A DNA stretch of 49,620 nucleotides from assembly GCA_001655205.1 (NCBI GenBank), contig LPNZ01008715.1:1-49620 (forward strand). Reading direction: 5' to 3'. Source of the stretch: Lenisia limosa. Its lineage: Eukaryota; Protista; Breviatea. Positions 3,001-16,679 of the stretch are shown in pieces; the first letter of the stretch is position 1, and each line of letters begins with the position of its first letter. The notes below the pieces were generated by a model. It made no database searches. It was given only the letters and a program-made list of their open reading frames with translations, and was not told the origin of the DNA. The translations under genes were made by a program, and so were the position numbers.

Positions 3001-5233
3001 TTTTAATATTCTTCCTGTTGCCTCTGAAGCATGGCTGAGTGAAGCCCTAGGAAGAAATTAAACATACTATCATCCCAGGAAATATCAATATTACAGAGGA
3101 TTACTGATATGTTCAGTTTGGAAGAGAGCCAAAAAAACCTATCACAAATGAGTACTCCAACCTTAGCTCAATTGATACCTTGGCAAGAGAGGCCACCTCG
3201 TGGAAATTCCCTAAAACTGGCACCTAAAATACCATTAATGAACTGAACACACACACACAAAAAAAAAAAAAAAAAACTTGGGGAATGGAAACACTCTTTC
3301 TTGTTTGAAATTAATTAGCATACGTTTTTTGATTTTAGTAGCCTCAGAGGAGATAACACCGGTTCAATATCTCCTAGAAATGTCAGAATCAGAGTAAAGT
3401 AAAACTGAAACTGTTGACAATATGGAGGAAAGCAATGCATCGTCAACAAACCTGGTGAAGTGTATGAAGTCATTAAAAAATGCCCATTTGCATATAATAT
3501 GTTATATTTCATAACGAAAATAATCGAGAAAGTATGTATTACAAGGGAATGCAGAAAAACTGATTACTGACCTTTCATATGCATACATGCATCGACAGCT
3601 TCCCTGTGAACAAACGTGTTGAGAGTTGGGCCGAGGATGAAAGAGTTCAGCATTGTATCGTACTGGGCTGATAAAGATTCAATTGTAAATCAAGGTAATT
3701 AATAAAAAATATATTTCCCTATTCACGAAGCTTAAAACCAAATCAATTCAGGTAATTATCTTGATTTGGTTACTTTTCAGAAAAAAAAAAAAAAAATAAA
3801 NNNNNNNNNNNNNNNNNNNNNNNNNNNNNNNNNNNNNNNNNNNNNNNNNNNNNNNNNNNNNNNNNNNNNNNNNNNNNNNNNNNNNNNNNNNNNNNNNNNN
3901 NNNNNNNNNNNNNNNNNNNNNNNNNNNNNNNNNNNNNNNNNNNNNNNNNNNNNNNNNNNNNNNNNNNNNNNNNNNNNNNNNNNNNNNNNNNNNNNNNNNN
4001 NNNNNNNNNNNNNNNNNNNNNNNNNNNNNNNNNNNNNNNNNNNNNNNNNNNNNNNNNNNNNNNNNNNNNNNNNNNNNNNNNNNNNNNNNNNNNNNNNGAA
4101 GGAAAGAGGGAGCCAGAACGCAAAGACGCCACCACCGGTGACATTAGATTGGAGTATACATCCACAGCTTGTCCTTCACTGGTCTGAAGAATAAGTCTTA
4201 GAGCTTCTTAGGTTGTAGATAATAAATATTATCTCATACACGAAACTAAAAACATCGTAGAGCTTCAAAAAAGAATATTATATACCAGCTGACCTCAGGT
4301 AGAGGAGTTGGCTTTCGTAAACTGTCAGTAAACGGATCAGCATATCTAAACATAATCATTTGGGGTATCTGTGGAGGCCCTAAATATTTTCCAATAAACC
4401 AACCGAACACAGGGGTCCGCTTTCTCCGATTGGTACCACTCCAAACTAACAACAGGCGAAGGGCTAGTGGTGATTAGCTGTAAAAACGGTTCACTTAGAT
4501 GATACTTGACCACAACATTGTCCTTATGCAACAATTGCCTACTCTCCTCCGGGAACGGTGCTTGTCCTGATGATTGAACCTTGTTCGCAATCAACACAGT
4601 GGATAGAACCGTCGCGACAGCCTGCTGAGAGTTGGTGGCCTGTCAATGGTTATTGAACTGTTGAAAATGTAAAATTGGCAAATATCTCTCAATATTAAAC
4701 AAAATGGCTTCACTTTGGTAGGAATAAAAACATATACTTATTTGTCTACGGAAGAAAGGCAAACAACACAAGTATGAAACTACATACGACATATTTTTGG
4801 AGATTGTAAACCACATTTTAGGTCAATAAGACCGCAACACGAATGTCTTTCGCTTACAATTGTTTTGCCAGGCAATTGCAGTTACAGGACTCTCGAATTT
4901 CATTGTCCATATTGACTGAAAAGTTATCATGTAAACGTTGAGTATTTCAATGAAATATATATTTCAACGTCATTTCAATGAAGTTAAAGGAGAATACCCT
5001 TTTCAATAGCATACCTTGCCAGAGGGTCTGAGGAGAATAAGCTGGCAATCCTCTGTCGAAACGACGGTTAATGATTCAGATGGATCAAATGATAGGGCAA
5101 GGATAGTGCTTGGGAAACTCTACAAAAAGTTATGAAAATAAACTCAACAGGTAATTATGGAAACTGATAACTGACCTTCATTGCAACTGATTTCTATACA
5201 ATATACTTAGAACCACGGTGTCCTGTGATCCAT
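1..5233 (-). CDS. ANAPC4: Anaphase-promoting complex subunit 4-like protein (multi-exon; 3' end beyond window start; start codon uncertain, ATG candidates at 5181 and 5233)
   Basis: Hand-spliced GT-AG exons give [35 protein letters not shown] / [19 protein letters not shown] / [20 protein letters not shown] / SPVVSLEW / [17 protein letters not shown], matching the order and motifs of the APC4 N-terminal WD40-like region. A helical part follows ([35 protein letters not shown]) resembling the APC4 long domain. Gap 3801-4097 interrupts the model. Confidence 0.75.
2..82 (-). repeat. 27-bp coding tandem repeat, at least 3 copies, encoding IPVFQDSPA in the low-complexity C-terminal region of the APC4-like gene
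   Basis: GGGGAATCCTGGAAAACTGGGATGGCT, GGGGAATCCTGGAAAACTGGGATAGCG and GGGGAATCCTGGAAAACCGGGATGGTT lie head to tail inside an open minus-strand exon (1-465). Confidence 0.9.
3801..4097. other. Assembly gap (N run); other gaps at 10931-10986, 11614-11726, 12937-12946, 16425-16507 and 30245-30254
   Basis: N characters in the sequence; several abut homopolymer tracts or repeats. Confidence 1.
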
Positions 5234-5454: not shown

Positions 5455-7827
5455 ATGGCAGTGATTGCAGAAGTGATAGAGGAAGACGAGGCGTCTGGGG
5501 TCCAGTTAGTTATCTCTCCCCGCCATGTTCAGAGCACAGCATTGATTATTCTCGTGATTACTGGGCTTGTTTTAAGGTATGATTCTTTGAATCAATATTG
5601 GATGTTTATAGCTACTTCGGTTGTGAATGGGTATTTTTCTTCATTTGCTGTTGACTGTTTTCCCAGTTGGGTGCAATTCTGTTTTGTGGATTTATTGGTC
5701 CTTTATAATAATAAAAAAATGTAACATGATCAGCTTGCCACTTGTTGGTGTTGACATTGACACATGTATGCATGATCGTTTCTATCCTGAAATCAAGGTT
5801 GGGCATCGTGTATGTTATTTTACTGAAACAGCAACTATATGTTTATTTTTACTGTTATAACTGACGTGTACTTGTTGTTCATATCTCACTAGATGGTGAC
5901 CTCCCTCCCTCGCTCACACATTTAGAGAGGACTATTTGGGCTGAAAGCACCGCTTGTCCACGACCTTAGTGTTACATGTCTCGTGATATGCGCAATCTGG
6001 CTCACATATGCCACTGCCGCTCCTGATCATTCAGTAGGCACAATATATTATGTGTATGTAACCTCAGTATTTTCAAGGAAACTCCGTGTGTCCCCTAATT
6101 CATCGCGTTGCATCCTTATTCTTGTTTGTTTTTAAACTAATTGACATATTTAGATTGAGCGCCATATGTCTAAAAACACCGCTGCTGGGTTTGTGGTTGA
6201 TTATATTCTTTTTTGTCTTCTCTTTGACAAACAGTAATTTGGGTTGAGATATGAACATTGACTTCTTAGGATTCAACACTTTTCCCATACAACTGTCATC
6301 CATGAAAAGGTTTGGTGTTCTGTGTTGACGAATAATTCGAAATGACATGAACATGTCATACGTAGTATTATACTATATGAATCTCATTCAATGGTTTTAT
6401 GTCTTTGTGACACAGTCCAACATATTTTAGGTGACACTGAAGTCAATAAAGAATTTCTGGAATTCAATGGTATGGGGGGCATTCCTGAGTACAAAACGTT
6501 CTTGTTTTACTTGCAGGGTGACTCGGAAGATGAAGAAATAAGTAGTGATGACAGTGAGTATCATCGAAAATCAAATGAAGATAGTCAGAGGGGTGTGCAT
6601 GAAAGGTCATGGACTACGTCTTGATGTGTGCCTATTTGAATAATGACCTAAAACCTCACTTATTCTACTTGTTATTTATTAATTTGATAGAGTAGACAAA
6701 TTCAAGTGGTATACCCTTTTTCGATTATCCTTGTGACATAATTTTTTTAGACTCATGGATTGCGTTTAATCCTCAAACAGTTGCATTTGTACTCTTAGCT
6801 GAACTATGGTGTGTGTATTATTAATATCTTGGTTTTTTGTATATCGTTTGATGGTGTTGTTACAACTGTAGGCATTTGGCTATGTACCAATGGAACTCTT
6901 CACTCAAGCATGCAATGAAAGACAATTTATGTAATCGACACCCAAACAGGTGGGACTATTAAGATTGGATTATATATGTCATTTTCAAGCATATGAATGA
7001 TATTTTGTGAAGGCATTGATTCATTTCAACAATTTAACTGTTTCATCTCCATAGTGTCAGTGGGCACTCCAACTTCTTTCTTTTCGCTTCCCTTGCAATA
7101 CTTATGACCATCGCGCGTCTTGGCACAAGCCTTAGAAAGTATGTGGTCAATTTTTAGGAAGGCAAATGATTTGTTCCTTAATTAGTTAATGAAACCAATA
7201 TCTTTTCAAACAAATATTACCCAATATACATCTGCATCCAATACATATTGTTACCATGTAGAATACGACTGTATGTGACAGTTGTTCTGTATCTCATGTT
7301 TGTTTTCCTTGCTTCTACAACTCTTCTGAACACCTTTTTTAACGGTAGGGAAGTATTCTTTTTTGAGACAATTCATTCTAAAATTCAGTATCAGAAAGCT
7401 ATTCTTGGTAGTTGGATTCTTGAATAGTTATTGATTCTCACTACCATTTAGGCTACCATACAGCTCGTCAAATGGCCCTTGGTTTTGCTTTCGGTGCAAT
7501 ATCCTTCCTCTGTTTCCAGCGCTATGTTCTCCCCCAACGTATGTGACTTGATTGGGTCATAACTTGGGCTTCCCTTCGGTCCCAAAAAGACCGTTTAAAT
7601 ATCGATATTTATCGAGGATTTATCGAGATATTCAGTCTTTTTGGGGCATTATATGTAATATGTAGAAATGTATTGCAAGAAGTTATGTAATACACTCCAT
7701 AATTGGAATTCCTAACATTACTGACTCTAAAGAACGTGAGACTCTCGCAATATTGGCGTTGAGGGGTTTGATAGGTGTGGTTGTTCTTCTTCTATCCGTA
7801 CAGTTCGCGCCTATACTCTATGCATAA
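5455..7827 (+). CDS. Multi-pass membrane protein with C-terminal PAP2 (lipid/dolichyl-pyrophosphate phosphatase-like) domain
   Basis: Spliced exons give hydrophobic segments, then SSLKHAMKDNLCNRHPN (C1-like), VSGHSNFFLF (C2 SGH) and FFNGYHTARQMALGFAFG (C3-like GYHTxxQ, as in DOLPP1-type enzymes); stop TAA at 7825-7827. The join across 6517-6750 is uncertain, so two genes cannot be fully excluded. Confidence 0.55.
7581..7645. repeat. 65-bp intronic foldback: perfect 11-bp inverted repeats around an internal palindrome
   Basis: CCCAAAAAGAC (7581-7591) pairs with GTCTTTTTGGG (7635-7645); internal AAATATCGATATTT palindrome and two TTTATCGAG copies. Confidence 0.7.
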
Positions 7828-8383
7828 GAACTTGATGTATTATTGTTCATGAACTACAACACTTGTCAATTTCAAATTAAATTACATATTAAATACTTAC
7901 TTGTAAAATGCACACAACTTCAACATAATTCAACCTTAGAAAATGGCCTGAACGGCAAATCTTGATAAATAAGAACAGAGGAGTCCAACAACAATAATAG
8001 TATATTATGGGAATCATAAAGTGGTATTAAAATAGTAGTATACATAGCTATATAGTACGTATAATATTGTATGATTTGTGCAGTTTGTCATAAAGCAGTA
8101 TATCATATATTAAACACAATTACCAACCTTTGTTTTTGTTAGAGCTCTTTCATTGCTCCTTCTTGTCTACACTCCACGCCAAAGCAGTTGGTCTAATCAC
8201 ATTTATTAGCATTATAAGGATACTATAATATGTACCATCATATGTGTGTGGATAGAAACAGACAATAATCTTAAATACAAACAGATGAGAAGACCCCCTA
8301 GTATATATTACGACAAAAAATAACATTACAAATGCTTCAAACATACGTTGTGTCAAAAACAGGATTCATTACCAACCGTGTCA

Positions 8384-9947
8384 TTAATCTGGGGCTTGGG
8401 GATAACGTGTGCCCTGACTGTGGTGCCATTAGGTTGTCGCCAAGAGAATGGACTAAAGAAATTTAGTGCATAAGTCTAGTGATACATCTTCATTGAACCT
8501 CAAAAGATGTTCAACAGAGGTGGCTAAGCACTTTTAAACAAAAAGTATGGACCACCCCCCTCCCCCCGGGTTCTCATATTACGAAAGAGCACGCCTCACA
8601 TACTTGGTACAGTAGCTGTGGGAATTGATGTAAGATTTGCGTTTGATGTCGTTTTTTCAGCAAATCCTGTGCGACAAGTGAAAATCACAAGGGGTTTTCT
8701 TTGATTTATGGGAATGGAATAAAAACAGATATCCAAAACAAAATCCCCACTGCCTAGATGATGATCGCACATATATCCCCAAACTGACCTTGTTGTCTTA
8801 GGTCCATTTGCCCAGTCTTGAAAGCATCGGGCTTCTTATGTCGCACAACATCTAAAGAATTGTGTAAGTATTGGGCAAGCATATGATGAAGCCAAAGTAA
8901 TAACATCAATATATACATATTCTAGTAAATGTATAGTATGTATATGTATGCACATGGGTCAGATGATAAATTAGAAAAGAAACAGCTAACACCACTCAGC
9001 CACACATATCAGAGTTTAGAACATGAATAATCGCAAAATTTACACAATCCCAAAAACCCAACGATGAGTACTGACGTTCTTCTCGTCGAAATAATTAATT
9101 TCCAAATTGGCAGCCATCTCCTGTCCTAACAACCGAACAGCCTATTCAGTCAACACAAAATGCCCAATGTAGAAAGGAAGCAACAAAATTAAGCACGTAT
9201 ACCACAAGACAACAAAGACATAAACAAAAAAAAAAATGCTCTTTTGCTTACTTGTTTTTCCTTTATTGGAGAAGAAAGGTCAATTTTATCCACACGGTAA
9301 CCGTTCAGAATAAGATAGTAGTGAGGCGTACTTTGAGCTAGAGTAAACTTAGTTATAATAATAGGAAAATGAATCATATTGTAATCACCTCTTCACTCTC
9401 TAAATCACAATACCCACAAGGTCGCTTCATCATTCGAATGTAAATATTGTTGAGAGGACCGCAAGAAATAACACGTCCTTCAATAGAAAAGAGGTAAGTC
9501 CTGTTTGGTTAAATGTTAAATATTTAAAGACAATGGAAAGCATTTCCTATTAAAAAAACATTCACTCATTCGACAAACCCAGTTTGATGGTTAATTTCAT
9601 AGTACCGCACATGCCGATATGTGAAAATGACAAAGATCGAGACAGTGATTGACGCAATGATCACTACTAAGTAGTCCTGGTTTGTAAAAATAAAATAAAA
9701 ACAAATAAGAGCTGAATTATATGCAATCAAAAATCTTGCTCACTGATATTTGTACTCCGAAATACGTCAAAAACGCCAATGTAACAAGGGTGAAGATAAG
9801 AAGAAGCCAGCCTGCCGTGAAACGCTTGTAACGCAGGCCTAACTTCATGACTCCTGACTCATTTCTTGTAAATGGCCAATAAGGGTTAACTTCTAATTTA
9901 CGCTCTAGGGCCTCTAAAGGTCCAGCTTTGCCTTTGAAAATCGGCAT
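8384..9947 (-). CDS. TMEM249: TMEM249 (CatSper auxiliary subunit, DUF4579 family) homologue, about 8 exons
   Basis: Spliced protein: ERKLEVNPYWPFTRNESGVMKL..GWLLLIFTLV / DYLVVIIASITVSIFVIFTYRHVR / TYLFSIEGRVISCGPLNNIYIRM / HYYLILNGYRVDKIDL / LLGQEMAANLEINYFDEKNVSTHHVVRHK. It is colinear with human TMEM249 as I recall it ([77 protein letters not shown]). Splice phases are consistent across these homologous exons. Confidence 0.85.
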
Positions 9948-10240
9948 GATTAAAAGTGGTGGCGTCAATCAATAGATAAAAAGATATACGTATGAAAATC
10001 GGTATGTATATAGATCTAGTTAAATTTTATAGATTATTCTGCTTAGAAGAGGGAGGAAGAGAAGAAACAAAGAGGAAATATGATGAAAAGGTTAAAGTGT
10101 TTTCGAAAGTTTTCGATAACATCGATAAATTGTACTAGTTCTGGAAAAACACGATATTTTGGAGCAGTTTTGGAGTTTTCGGTTTTTAGCACATATTTTT
10201 GACTGTATATAAAAAAAATAAAACGAAGTTTGGAAACATA
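9948..10240. promoter_or_regulatory. Probable bidirectional promoter between divergent TMEM249 and STAT-like genes
   Basis: Only 293 bp separate the two divergent ATGs (9947 minus, 10241 plus); contains a purine-rich GAGA-like tract near 10045-10080. No specific factor site is claimed. Confidence 0.5.
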
Positions 10241-13200
10241 ATGGCCTACCCCTTGAGATCTCAGGGTAATGCTCCCGATGTTGACTATCCATCTAAAACG
10301 GACGACGCCTATTGGGGTGAAGAAGACTATGAAGATGATGACGACGATGCTTATTCCCCAAATAGATCTAGACGTGGAAAACGTAACAAAGCTCAGCAGA
10401 GAAGGAAAGGCGACCAGGTTCTCCTCTCCCCTGTCACACCAACGCCTAGTTATAGATCAGGAGAGAAGGTAACTGATGTTTCGGACCATTCCTTGTATGG
10501 ATGTGGAGAGAATTTCTTCAAATTCCCGTAAGTACAACTCTTTTCTCCTTCCAATCTTATTTTTAGGTTCAATATGAAGGTTATCTTCGACCATGTCCAC
10601 GAAATGGAAACAATCAAACTTGTGTCTCGTGAATATGACAATCAGATCTACTTTGATGTCCGTCCTAACAAGCTCATCCCAATCAGACTTGAACTTGAGG
10701 TTGGAAGAGATAGCGCTTGATAAAATATATAATTGTATTAGTGTTGAATGTTGTTCTTATGTTTCTTTCTTCACCTTCGTAGAACCCCCTTCCTCCCATT
10801 CCAGCATCATCCTACTACAGTCTCCGATGCGAGCTTCAAGGAATCACACATCAACTGAAAGTCAGTGTTGGATTTTTTTACGTTTTGTGCTACTTCAACG
10901 CAGTACCCCCCCCCCCTTATTTTTGTTTTGNNNNNNNNNNNNNNNNNNNNNNNNNNNNNNNNNNNNNNNNNNNNNNNNNNNNNNNNCAAAGTCAAGCGTA
11001 TGCCGAAGTGCAAAAAGTGTGAAGGCAGTATTTCACCCATTGCTGTTGGTGAAGGCAAAACCTGGGTCGTTTCCGAGTTCGACAAACTTACCTGCAAGTT
11101 TGTTGGGTTTCAGATGCACCTTCCTGAAAAACGGACCAGCATTACACTAATAGAGGCCTGTTGTATTCCAATCACACGCATACTTTTTTTATAGATTGAG
11201 TACCTGCTTTATTATTATTACAGGTTTTTTTTGGCCCTTGGTCCAGACAACGTTCTACATCAGAAAATTCACCACATGTATTTTTATATCCTTTACAATC
11301 ACTTACAAGCCATGTTCCATTTTTGATATTATTAATTGTATTATTTCAAGCCTCTTGTGTGATTGTAGTGGTTCCAAAGGTTTTCTGTCTCCCACAGCTA
11401 TTTTGTAATTCATTCAAACCTTCGCACGTCCACCTTGTACTGACCATATAGCGTACAATGGACCAACCGCATCGATATTCCCATCAAAGTGGCATGCTGC
11501 ACTGTCCAGCATGACCTAGCGCACTTCCGCATCCTGTTCGTCATCGAGCGCATTGACGAAGGCAGTGATGAGCCTGTCCTGGTAACTCGAATGGCGTGGG
11601 GGGGGGGGGGTAANNNNNNNNNNNNNNNNNNNNNNNNNNNNNNNNNNNNNNNNNNNNNNNNNNNNNNNNNNNNNNNNNNNNNNNNNNNNNNNNNNNNNNN
11701 NNNNNNNNNNNNNNNNNNNNNNNNNNTAGTGGATCCAAGTCCGCTGTGCATTCTCATTATCGTTGCATGCAATCTGATATATTTCAGTATGGCTCCTATT
11801 CTGTCCCGAAAGCGAGCTGGAAAGGCTCCTCAGGCACGACCCCCCGCGTCTCAGAAATCGGTGTGCGGGTGCCTGTATTACTCATTATATCATTTTCCGT
11901 GTGAAACCAATCCTCAAACCTAAGTGTATACCGTCATATCACCTTACGGAAACATGTGGAGATACCAAACAAGTCATTAATAATCCATGTAGACCGCAGT
12001 GGACCGTCGCCGTCCTGCTGTCGAGCATGTTAGACGTATGTTTCGGAAGGGAGGGGGGGGGTACCAATAGCAGCATAGTGTCAACTTGTCGGTTTCACAC
12101 ATGCCACATCTCGTGTCAATATTTAGTGCTTTCCTATTTCAGTGACATTTTCCCATGAAACTGATCTCTTCCAGACAAGTAATTATACATCACCAATATT
12201 TACCCTTGTAGCGGCCCGCAGAAAGCGCAGTCGCAATGCCTATGAAGACATCCCGGATATGCCGGCGGTGATGGCGGTGTCTGATAAGATTTCGCCGTTT
12301 GGGGCCGGGGTACAAGCTGTCACGCAAGGCCAAGGTTTGGCTGGATTATATACATACATTCTTTGGATGTACATGCGATGATAGCGCTCCAACTAGCACA
12401 CCTGAAAACTACATCGATAAATGATTTTAACATATCGTAGTCCTTTGAAGTAACAGGTAGTTTTGGTATTAACATATTTGAGCGGATTTCAAACAGTTAG
12501 AAAGGCAGTCTACATGTACTATAACTTTTTGCGTATCAATATCCCTTACTTTGTACCAAACCTACATCATTATTTGACATGCCATATATTGTATAGTTGA
12601 CTGAAACTTCAAATCGCTCAATCTATGAAATAACAATCAAATACCAGTCTGATGTGGTATAACCAGCATATAGCATATATTATGTGCATGTACTATGAGG
12701 GAAAAAATTCCATATTATTCCATGAAGTAATTAAACTGATGCATTCCGTAAGTGTGATTCACAATTATTCCATCCAGTAGGAGATTGCTTGGAAAAGATT
12801 AAGCCCACAGTGATAAAGGCATTTCTCATAGTGCCAATTAGCCCTCCACTTCTTTCTATTTTACCATTCATTCGCAGATTTACTATTTAGAATTGTGTAA
12901 AAAATGAAAGCCCAACACAATACCATATTTTTGAATNNNNNNNNNNGCGTTTGCGCGGCATATGAAGATATCAGATCATTGCAGGATTTTCCTAAGTAGC
13001 ACGGATGATAATCATGAATTACTCTAATTACTTGAATTTCCATGACCACTTCAGATTTGTCTGAAAGCGTCACTCGTATTGTTGGTGAAACTCTGGGGCC
13101 TGCTCCTACGGGTAGGTTGTAACATTTTTTTTAAGGATCTTACACATTCATGGTCACTTCATAATTTTTTTAAACAATTGGCAGGATATAATATGATTGT

Positions 13201-16200
13201 ATATGTAACTTGTACAGCTGTCGCCCCTGAGCTGATGCAAACGCACAACATCGACATGGCCCTTTCCAATGGCTTTGAACAGATGCCACAACCTGCGCTC
13301 ATGGGTAAGCTGGATGACTACATTTCCTTATACAGCCATTAGCCTAGTTATTCTTCTTCTAAGTATTCAGATTCCCAAACAGGACCAACTCCCTCTAAAG
13401 GTTTGTAATTTGCTTTTTGACTGTTCTTTTATCTTTAACAAAGGGCTTTGTTTTGTTATTTCTTTTTAAAAGTTTAGATGAAATTGCTAGGCATCTCAAA
13501 ACTCTCGACTCCCTTTTCTCCAACAATGTAGGCGCAATTATATTCCCACGTTCTACATACTCTGTATTACCACTGCGTATCCCATTGAATGGGATCACGA
13601 TGACGCACCCACGAACATTACCCTCACCTCACTTGCCTATTCTATTTTAACTTTCAAGACTCCCGTATCTGTCGATGTTTTATGGGGAGCTATTTTCCCC
13701 ATCCTTGCCTGCTACAGCTCCAAAGCATCATCTTACCATAAACTGCTTATGTGTGACATTCTTGGTGGGAGGTTAATATAGTTTTTTTTATATATTATGT
13801 ACATTAAAGTTGACCCCCCCCCCCCTATCTCTATCGTTGCCTGATGTTTTCATTGTTTATTGTTATTAGAAGAGAGCCCCTATTTCAGCATAACGATAAT
13901 TACTCACACTCACTTAGACACGAGCCTCAGCGGAGAAGTTAACATTGAACACTTCCAAGCCTTCCGCAAGTGGTTTGGCGAAACATCTCTTTGGATTGGC
14001 AAGGTTCGAATGGCTATTTTAACTCCTTCCTGAGGGTCTCGCTTATTAAAGTATAATCTGGTCGCCAAATTACATATTACATGTATAGTATGATATTTTA
14101 AAGGAGTTTCTTATTTTGGCATACTGATTGGATAATATTATGTCTCTAATGACGGCATACCTTAATTTAAGGAGTTAACTCTTCAGCTTGAGATTCTGAA
14201 GCCAATCGCGATCCGCAGGTTTGTGTTTGATAAACAGGATGCTGTTTATTTTATTGTTTTTGTAAAGTATTTTGACAATCTGTAAACTGCACTTAGGCTA
14301 AATATTAACTGCTTCGCAACAGAATTACCTAACCCCCTGCTCTATAGTTGGTTCCATGGATTCGTATCGTCACACAGCGCCAAGAGCTGCCTTCTGAACT
14401 CCTCATTAGCCGTCGGTACATTTGTTGTGCGTTTCTCACAGAGCCGGGCAGAGGACAATGGTGTGTTAAAAATAATATGTTTTGGTTGCTGTTTATACCT
14501 CAGAAGTGAACTAAAAATGCCACCTTCTAAGATTTTAGGACTCACGGTTTCAACGGTGTCACTATATCACAATCAAGGTTCGCCTGTCATATTCACTTCT
14601 TGTTTCAAACAAAACAACAAATGGCCCTACTGCTACATGTTGACAATCCCCCACTTATATGTTCCAGTTGTTGTTATTGAGTACCCTGTGCGATTAGATC
14701 TCAATGGGGAGTGCTCAATGTGGGTTGCCTTTACTCGAGACAAGGACACCCCAAAAACTGATGTATGATGGACTTGAGTTTGGCTGTCGCTGCAAGTGTC
14801 TTATTTTTTTTATTTATTTTTTTTTCTTCTTTTTTTTTCGATTTAACTTTTTTTTATTTGCTTTAACTATACATGCTACGGGCGCTAAATCCGATTTAAT
14901 TCGATTATTTTTTATTTTTAATTTCAAACTGCTTTCTCCTTTACACAACAATCAGAAGAAAAAAGTAATTTGTCTCATTTAGAAGTCGAGTAATATACAT
15001 TATATATTCAACTAAACATAACATCAAAATACAAAAATAGAGACAGGATTGTATTACTTTTTGGGCTTCTTTTTAGTCGTGGTCTTGGTGTTCGCTCCTT
15101 CTTTAAGTTGTCGCTTACGGTTTGGCTCCAAGCTGGCTATGTCATCGAAGTTTCAAAAATAACCTAAAATTGTCACCATTGATAAAGTATACAATGTGCT
15201 ACTCCATTTTGAATAAAAAAAGATGGCTTTACATCCCTTCGGCCCGGCCATGGCACCCATTTCTGTGAAGAATCTCTGATTTCGAGCTTTGACTTCCTTC
15301 AAGTTGTCAACTGTAGTGACTACTTTGTCGCTTAGAAGGGTTACTACACGCTCGCCTGGCGAAAGGGGAATGCGAGCCATTGGGGTGATACTTTCTGTAT
15401 TCGGTCCGACTTCTACAACCTTGGTAACAATGTCGAAGATAGCTTAAGATGTAACATTTGTTGAACAGAGGATTGTTGAAGCTCCAAGAACTTTCTTGAG
15501 AGTACTTGGTGAAAATATCATTGCTCAAAAGAGTCGCCATGGAGGCCATACCTTCCAAAAAAGTATTTCTAGCTCCAATATCGTTCTGAACTCGCTCTTT
15601 GGCGAACTGTACAAGTGCGAATTGGAACTGTGTTGAACTGTAGGGTTGCTTCTCATTCAGCTTCGTGCGGAATTTGGCAACTTCTTTTGTCTCAGGTTTA
15701 GGTTTAAACTGGGGGAACGGATCAATGCGGAGTGGGGTCATGAAGGCGGTACCAGGTGGGCTTTCGAGGTTGATGGAATAGAGGCTCTTGAGGAAGGGAG
15801 GTGTGAAAGCTGGTCGTGATAAGCTTCACATACTTTTCTAAGGAATAGATTCCTCTCAGAAACGTTGAGGAAGGTGAGAAACTCGGGCCTTGCTTCCTCC
15901 GTTTCACGTCAAAAGGAACTTGTAAAACTGGATCAGGTCTATTTTCCATCTCAAACAGGGGAAAACCAAAGAAGAAATTTTGTCAAAAAAGCAAAAAGTA
16001 ATTAATGATCACTTTCAGTTGGGCTTGTCTTCTGAAAAAAGCTAATGCTTTGTTAATATTTGAATATTGCACAAAATATAATGAATAAGAACACAATGGG
16101 TCAAAGAGAGAACTTTATTGTTTTAGTGAACAAGATCTTCTTTTTTTTTGTTTTTGGTGAAAGGTAATCTTACTCCAAAATCCCCCTTTTCTATTCTGGC

Positions 16201-16679
16201 TCCCGGGTGTTGAATTTATGCATTTCTACTTCAAATATCAAGGGAGTAAAAGGTCTAAAAATTATAAATTAAAAAATAATCGGATTAAATCGGATTTAGC
16301 GCCCATAGCATATTTATACTTGTTTTAAAAAATATCCCATGGCCTTTCGCTAACTTACATCTAGGTCGTGACAAAAACCTACTCCAGCTTCGACCAACTC
16401 CTTGACACATGTGCAGATGTGTTCNNNNNNNNNNNNNNNNNNNNNNNNNNNNNNNNNNNNNNNNNNNNNNNNNNNNNNNNNNNNNNNNNNNNNNNNNNNN
16501 NNNNNNNTTTGCTTATCTCATTAAATCTTTATTTCGAAATGCTGTGTTCAAGACTTGCAGTTTGGCGCATAAAGGGCAATCACTCACACCGCAGGTATAT
16601 TACCCCCGGAAAGGAGGCCCTCCCCTTAGAGTATGAGTTTCCGACTGGCGTCCAAGCCTTCTCGTCGCACCCTCAATGA
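10241..16679 (+). CDS. CudA-type DNA-binding domain plus linker-SH2 protein (STAT-like transcription factor), more than 20 exons
   Basis: N-terminal acidic then basic stretch (WGEEDYEDDDDDAY; RSRRGKRNKAQQRRKG). CudA-like core: KCKKC...IKVACCTVQHDLAHFRILFVIE...APILSRKRAGK. Pre-SH2 helix: VNIEHFQAFRKWFG. SH2: WFHGFVSSHSAKSCLLNSSLAVGTFVVRFSQSRAEDNGLTVSTV...TYSSFDQLLDTC. Tail: YITPGKEALPLEYEF...HPQ, stop 16677-16679. Four N gaps fall inside the gene. Confidence 0.75.
14879..16305. mobile_element. 1,427-bp TIR DNA element flanked by TA on both sides, inserted in an intron that splits the SH2 domain
   Basis: Left end CGGGCGCTAAATCCGATTTAATTCGATTATTTTTTA (14879-14914) versus reverse complement of right end TGGGCGCTAAATCCGATTTAATCCGATTATTTTTTA: 36 bp with 2 mismatches. 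TA at 14877-14878 and 16306-16307. Host exons resume in frame on either side (..TPKTD | VVTKTYSS..). Confidence 0.85.
15054..15949 (-). CDS. Four-exon gene of unknown function carried by the TIR element; 205 aa, basic NLS-like C-terminus
   Basis: Exons 15949-15883, 15809-15552, 15442-15233 and 15136-15054 with GT-AG introns of 73, 109 and 96 nt join in frame (618 nt). Product: MENRPDPVLQVPFDVKRRKQGPTFTPPFLKSLYSINLESPPGTAFMTPLRIDPFPQFKPK...AIFDIVTKVVEVGP...SSLEPNRKRQLKEGANTKTTTKKKPKK*. The first intron donor is the least certain. Confidence 0.7.

Follow-up and report, generated by a model that had tools for sequence, protein, structure and literature searches.

Introduction

Does a short transposable element lodged inside a protist gene carry an intact gene of its own? 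The question is raised by a locus in Lenisia limosa (Breviatea), on contig LPNZ01008715.1 of assembly GCA_001655205.1; positions 1 to 49,620 of the forward strand form the stretch analyzed here, called the window throughout (49,620 nt). The window contains an element of ~1,445 bp at 14870..16314 (ends ±1-2 nt) that is bounded by terminal inverted repeats (TIRs) and has its gene on the minus strand. An earlier note had read this element as the carrier of an intact, spliced, four-exon gene of 205 amino acids (aa), unrelated to transposases and either accessory or captured. We conclude, with a probability of roughly 0.85, that the element is a non-autonomous internal-deletion derivative of a ~4-kb pogo-like TIR transposon, and that it has since decayed further. 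What had been taken for an intact open reading frame (ORF) joins the first exon to the last ~230 codons of the parent's own gene; the supposed cargo would be a fragment of the family's transposase, and the proposal of a non-transposase gene under selection is abandoned.

The long form and the internal deletion

A protein search with the largest ORF of the element returned two sister ORFs, both in one assembly at ENA; their contigs and two more were examined. Comparison with one of these contigs, L001, exposes the central feature of the window copy. By BLASTN, window 15885-15806 aligns with L001 7758-7838 at 90% identity, and window 15810-14873 aligns with L001 10169-11104 at 86%; the intervening 2,330 bp (L001 7839-10168), which include the catalytic region, are missing from the window. 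The deletion junction lies at 15806..15810 on the minus strand, and the DNA contigs of other copies define it as well: contigs of the genomic run part from the window at 15809/15810, and one of them goes on into what lies beyond position 7838 in L001.

The long form is spread over two contigs. L001 combines internal long-form sequence with the same 3' end and TIR as the window copy. The 5' TIR was not found in L001 and is present instead in L010, where a terminus matching that of the window heads the long form at 3011-3081; this TIR (92% identity) and the 5' region behind it (81%) are followed by L001-type internal sequence at 96.5% up to the end of the contig. Together, L010 and L001 would describe a parent of ~4.0 kb with the termini of the window copy. 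Just inside the 5' TIR, L010 has ~175 nt (3082-3255) in the place of 16 nt in the window; either L010 took up an insertion or the window copy lost a second, small segment.

The element is multi-copy. Contig depth in the genomic run is ~34 in the unique flanks and sums to 66-215 inside the element (~2-6x), and variant DNA contigs of the element differ from the window copy by 5-10%. Within it, window 15499-15614 has a contig depth of zero with coverage on both sides, a hole of the kind that filtered records can leave.

These features match the textbook pattern of internal-deletion derivatives, such as Ds from Ac, deleted P elements, and deleted Tc1/mariner copies: the termini are those of the long form, a single clean internal breakpoint marks the lost catalytic region, copies are few, and leftover pieces of ORF stand out of context; we see no notable difference. 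The element also resembles Stowaway and Tc1/mariner miniature inverted-repeat transposable elements (MITEs) in its non-autonomy, its TA flanks, its intronic site, and TIRs held in common with a larger partner. It differs from them in length, at 1.4 kb longer than is typical, in its recognizable gene remnants, and in its handful of copies; a MITE in the strict sense (shorter than ~800 bp, numerous, and free of coding remnants) was rejected in view of the 1,445 bp, the gene remnants, and a depth of only ~2-6x the unique flank.

Termini and flanks

A repeat search of the window recovers the arms of the inverted repeat at 14868-14918 and 16266-16316, 51 nt long and 90% complementary. The 21-nt core of the TIR has 2 sites in the window, both in these arms, against a chance expectation of 0. 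Each arm carries the 8-mer ATCCGATT twice at a spacing of 10 bp, and the motif is absent from the rest of the 49.6-kb window. In the orientation of the gene, the 5' TIR (16266..16314, minus strand) has ATCCGATT at 16278-16285 and 16288-16295, and the 3' TIR (14870..14918, minus strand) has it at 14889-14896, with a second copy, one mismatch away, 10 bp further inward. Lying one helical turn apart, in the ~50-nt TIRs of the parent as well, the paired motifs would probably be bound by the transposase.

The ends were placed by aligning both termini of the window copy with those in L001, L002 (two), and L010; matching termini are present on four further copies. Similarity between copies, traced over five other termini of the family, reaches 10-11 bp beyond the ends first proposed and stops abruptly next to a TA dinucleotide on either side, at 14868..14869 on the low-coordinate flank and at 16315..16316 on the high-coordinate flank; TA also adjoins the termini of the other copies, within ±1 nt. 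The two TAs would represent a target-site duplication (TSD). The earlier description of near-identical 36-bp TIRs with a repeated motif is borne out as to the repeats and the motif, and corrected as to the ends, which had been set 10-11 bp too short. Likewise, TA is present on both flanks, although the dinucleotides first named (14877-78 and 16306-07) lie within the TIR, since the repeat and the similarity within the family extend past them. A 3-bp TSD, Harbinger-like or of the Fot TAA kind, was considered and dropped; the flanking sequences do not match. The element remains classified as non-autonomous, bounded by TIRs, flanked by TA, and of the Tc1/mariner-IS630 kind; the larger form with the same termini is the ~4-kb one on L010 and L001.

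What the window copy retains

When the conceptual protein of L001 is searched against the window by tblastn, residues ~513-745 alone find a match; the presumed catalytic triad falls at residues 274-430. The earlier statement that the element encodes no DDE triad is therefore correct: the window copy matches the protein only beyond it. All that precedes is a first coding exon remnant at 15811..15949 (minus strand), whose ATG (15949-15947) and first ~21 codons are shared with L010 (from 3536); exon 1 of the earlier note is thus the true first coding exon of the parent. Behind the junction come a remnant of the last large exon (15237..15810, minus strand; L001 residues ~513-708, from a DNA alignment of three copies, tblastn, and protein alignment), a remnant of the last intron (15164..15236, minus strand), and a remnant of the last exon (15054..15163, minus strand). 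The last of these encodes the basic tail, confirming the basic C-terminus noticed before, and ends in the ancestral stop, TAA at 15056-15054.

Alignment of the window copy with the DNA of L001 and L002 defines a series of defects in these remnants. Four extra nucleotides at ~15514-15517 shift the frame. Eighteen nucleotides are deleted between 15459 and 15458, a breakpoint that sister copies also reveal, in DNA as well as RNA contigs. At 15446-15444 there is an in-frame TAA where L001 and L002 have a sense codon. The conserved splice donor of the last intron, AAG/GT, is AAG/GG here (T>G at 15235). Finally, the loss of one nucleotide at 15153/15152 shifts the last exon into a TAG at 15139-15137; this base is present in most other genomic copies. 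The supposedly uninterrupted four-exon ORF of 205 aa exists only if at least two ad hoc introns are drawn around this damage.

That a stop-free path can be drawn at all is a point in favor of an expressed and selected gene of ~205 aa in a 1.4-kb element, a reading that we hold to be extremely improbable. The path uses three GT..AG introns; a brute-force search from the conserved ATG to the final TAA, allowing at most three GT..AG introns, each 20-200 nt long, finds 56,379 intron choices that are equally free of stops, and none with zero or one intron. Because there are so many, the spliced ORF carries no evidential weight. Furthermore, the proposed path spans the deletion junction and steps around the frameshift, the stop, and the mutated donor, and the ancestral frame continues straight across its second intron.

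RNA lends this gene no support. Most of the element has no RNA coverage (depth 0), and none of the three proposed splice junctions appears in the RNA contigs. The sole RNA contig within the element (15241-15458) has 20 mismatches to the window and contains the 18 nt that are missing here, so it derives from another copy; it runs unspliced across the proposed second intron. RNA from the window copy itself was not seen. The earlier note had named unsupported junctions, or a fragment of a known transposase, as outcomes that would refute it; the junctions are indeed unsupported, and the protein would be a transposase fragment. The substitutions relative to L001 (11/9/15 at codon positions 1/2/3; 12 synonymous and 21 non-synonymous codon differences; divergence of 5.3% in coding and 7.5% in non-coding sequence) suggest a pattern close to neutral decay, with no clear sign of purifying selection. 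Two indels among copies within the putative exons are multiples of three, which would suit a gene under selection; we return to them below.

Could a truncated product nevertheless act, by analogy with the KP repressor of P elements, as a regulator of the family's transposition? Either a first-exon protein of 75 aa or a C-terminal fragment might do so, and the copy does retain the promoter-proximal 5' region and the start codon, along with a tail that is conserved between diverged families. Against this stand the state of both products and the lack of transcripts: the conserved ATG opens no ORF other than that of 75 aa (15949-15722), which crosses the deletion junction and of which about half is out-of-frame sequence beyond it, and the tail is broken in three places. 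We judge such a regulator to be highly improbable. The window copy is better read as a decayed deletion derivative that encodes nothing functional.

The parent gene and its superfamily

In L001, positions 7835-10920 can be read as ten exons separated by canonical GT..AG introns of 37-185 nt. The conceptual product has 745 residues, no stop, and one frameshift (marked X); the parent gene would thus have ~10 exons and at least 745 codons. Three acidic positions stand out in it: D274 in the context FADETAF; E393 in LMEGARIH, where the relatives L006 (TMDGARIH) and L007 (MTDGHNIH) have D; and D430 in QVGDQY, which is QSNDSY in L004. They are separated by 118 and 36 residues, respectively. The three residues and their contexts are conserved across families that are only 25-40% identical, and we take these D/E/D contexts (DET.., ..DG..H.., ..LQ..D..) to be those of pogo/Fot1-type transposases.

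Behind the third D follows a tail of ~315 residues with a basic stretch at its end. In L004, a diverged family of the same genome, the tail forms one uninterrupted ORF of 278 aa directly after the third D, collinear with the pieces in L001 and the window (29% identity over 117 aa, E 9e-10; 28% over 112 aa, E 7e-9). For this reason, the predicted tail belongs to the same gene as the triad. This C-terminal tail resembles nothing known.

Searches of protein collections place the family within one genome. Apart from one spurious bacterial amidase, exhaustive phmmer and profile searches return relatives from the same assembly alone. In sets of 1.84 and 5.8 billion proteins, all relatives lie in repeated, decayed copies in that assembly, and no single-copy cellular gene is among them; a cluster look-up yielded no names. 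Capture of a host gene in the manner of Pack-MULE transduplication was rejected on two counts: the relatives are transposon copies in the same assembly only, and the region corresponds to the 3' portion of the long gene that belongs to the element itself. The sole independent computational support for a transposase is a lead, as scores below 0.9 count for no more: in a protein-language-model search with the L004 ORF, ten of ten named neighbors are DDE_1, pogo, or HTH_Tnp_Tc5 clusters, with scores of 0.80-0.84.

Members of the pogo superfamily have a TA TSD, lengths of 1.2-5.2 kb, proteins of 300-977 aa, and catalytic domains of the DD29-59D type, and DD36D has been reported for Mover and four ichthyosporean Fot-like elements (PMC7386202). 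The parent described here, at ~4 kb and at least 745 aa, fits the published ranges (PMC7386202), and its spacing of 36 residues falls within DD29-59D. It further shares TA flanks, TIRs of the 40-60 bp class, and a triad made up of aspartates with the Fot and Fot-like elements of this superfamily (IS630-Tc1-mariner group). It differs in that no single exon scores with the Pfam DDE_1 or HTH models, in the division of its gene into ~10 exons, and in the ~315-residue tail. Membership of the pogo superfamily is probable, short of proof from a profile or a fold: the assignment rests on motifs, spacing, TA flanks, and the sub-threshold language-model lead, because Pfam, the PDB profile search, and AlphaFold gave none. 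Transposase function of the parent gene is likewise suggested by its sequence. The suggestion of an undescribed transposon family holds only weakly, insofar as the family is too diverged for Pfam on single exons; the motifs, DD36D, TA flanks, and language-model neighbors point to the known pogo superfamily.

Several observations weigh against our interpretation. In searches of the single-exon ORFs of the window, the long form, and the relatives, Pfam found no DDE_1 (PF03184) or helix-turn-helix (HTH) domain; the PDB yielded no more than a chance match (E 4.2) to a family profile; and the AlphaFold model of the 278-aa L004 ORF, built on a 7-sequence alignment, was too poor to use, with a predicted local distance difference test (pLDDT) score of 45. 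The second catalytic position is E in L001. The frame at the N-terminus is ambiguous, as L001 7835-8292 (exons 1-2 of the long gene) is open in two frames. None of the copies seen is both intact and full-length: L001 is without the 5' TIR, and L010 stops at the contig end. A site empty of the element was not found, and the TA duplication is for that reason deduced from the flanks. Every copy derives from a single sample or assembly. Lastly, the copies differ by in-frame 3-nt indels at 15087 and 15773, and indels that are not of 3 nt lie outside the coding remnant; this hints at some past constraint, as expected of a once-functional gene in an active ancestor. Two further searches returned nothing: Pfam on the N-terminal exons of the long form gave no HTH match, HTH_Tnp_Tc5 being seen only among the language-model neighbors, and the ESM Atlas held no match for the window exon or for the L004 tail (score 0.41).

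Such results leave room for an alternative at the level of the parent: the long form may itself be a non-autonomous carrier, its intron-rich gene captured or otherwise cellular and unrelated, and its D..D..D pattern coincidental. The window copy would still be its deletion derivative. The failure of Pfam, the PDB profile, and the structure model to recognize a transposase fold speaks for this explanation, as do language-model scores under 0.9; the confinement of all relatives to repeated, decayed copies of the same assembly, the retention of the acidic residues and their contexts between families 25-40% identical, and the unanimity of the ten named neighbors speak against it. We consider it improbable, and keep to a pogo-like parent.

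The contigs of the relatives hold additional repeats. L002 bears, at 10361-11135, a second and more decayed family fragment with its own 3' terminus and paired ATCCGATT motifs; at 3941-4357, just downstream of the 3' TIR of its other copy, a large imperfect palindrome (442 nt matching its own reverse complement at 79%); and, at 8211-8970, tandem-like repeats. L006 1-673 is a copy from a related subfamily (~54-62% protein identity) in which pieces of the long gene's exons 1, 5, and 6 are fused; this further deletion derivative has an in-frame stop and retains D at the second catalytic position. At the end of the high-coverage contig L005, a pair of 44-nt inverted repeats (4311-4354 and 6109-6152, 93% complementary) bounds ~1.8 kb; the sequence is unrelated to the element studied here and probably belongs to another family of TIR transposons.

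Position in the host gene

The element lies antisense in a host gene on the plus strand. A polyA RNA contig of this gene (1,593 nt) shows ten GT..AG introns spliced in this stretch, and joins 14762 to 16365 with GT..AG borders. Because the host transcript makes this junction, the element is wholly intronic: it occupies the intron at 14763..16364 (plus strand), which measures 1,602 nt and has neighbors of 66-183 nt. The host exons (window 13053-16424, plus strand), spliced by the RNA junctions, form one open frame with the motifs WFHGF and GTFVVRFSQSR, a clear SH2 signature in the predicted protein. Pfam found no SH2 match in the unspliced ORF pieces, and the domain is recognized only after RNA-guided splicing. 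The nesting of the element in the SH2-coding region, as first described, is accurate as to its antisense orientation and its place between SH2-coding exons; the RNA junction puts it in an intron and not in coding sequence.

History of the copy and significance

The following history would account for the locus. The element was inserted, presumably, at a TA inside an intron of the SH2-domain gene. A single deletion of 2,330 bp, probably the product of abortive gap repair, took out the stretch that begins just behind the first exon and reaches codon ~512; what remained was both termini, that exon, and the tail. At best, a full-length relative could have mobilized the deleted copy in trans. Later damage (two frameshifts, a stop, the 18-nt deletion, and the lost splice donor) leaves it with nothing functional to encode, and the host removes it along with the intron. 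The tail invites a more far-reaching idea, which we regard as a long shot: its ~230-315 residues, 28-29% identical between diverged families, may represent a novel accessory domain in a pogo-like clade that is intron-rich and restricted to protists; deletion derivatives in which promoter, first exon, and tail survive could then be a source of trans-acting regulators of the family.

The immediate consequence is the removal of a false cargo gene from the list; beyond annotation, its importance is small. In general, a stop-free spliced ORF built by hand is not evidence where tens of thousands of such paths exist. For the host, the element accounts for the oversized intron of an SH2/STAT-like gene. 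For the family, the termini, the structure of the parent, and the putative catalytic triad are now defined in a diverged, intron-rich, pogo-like lineage that standard domain models miss.

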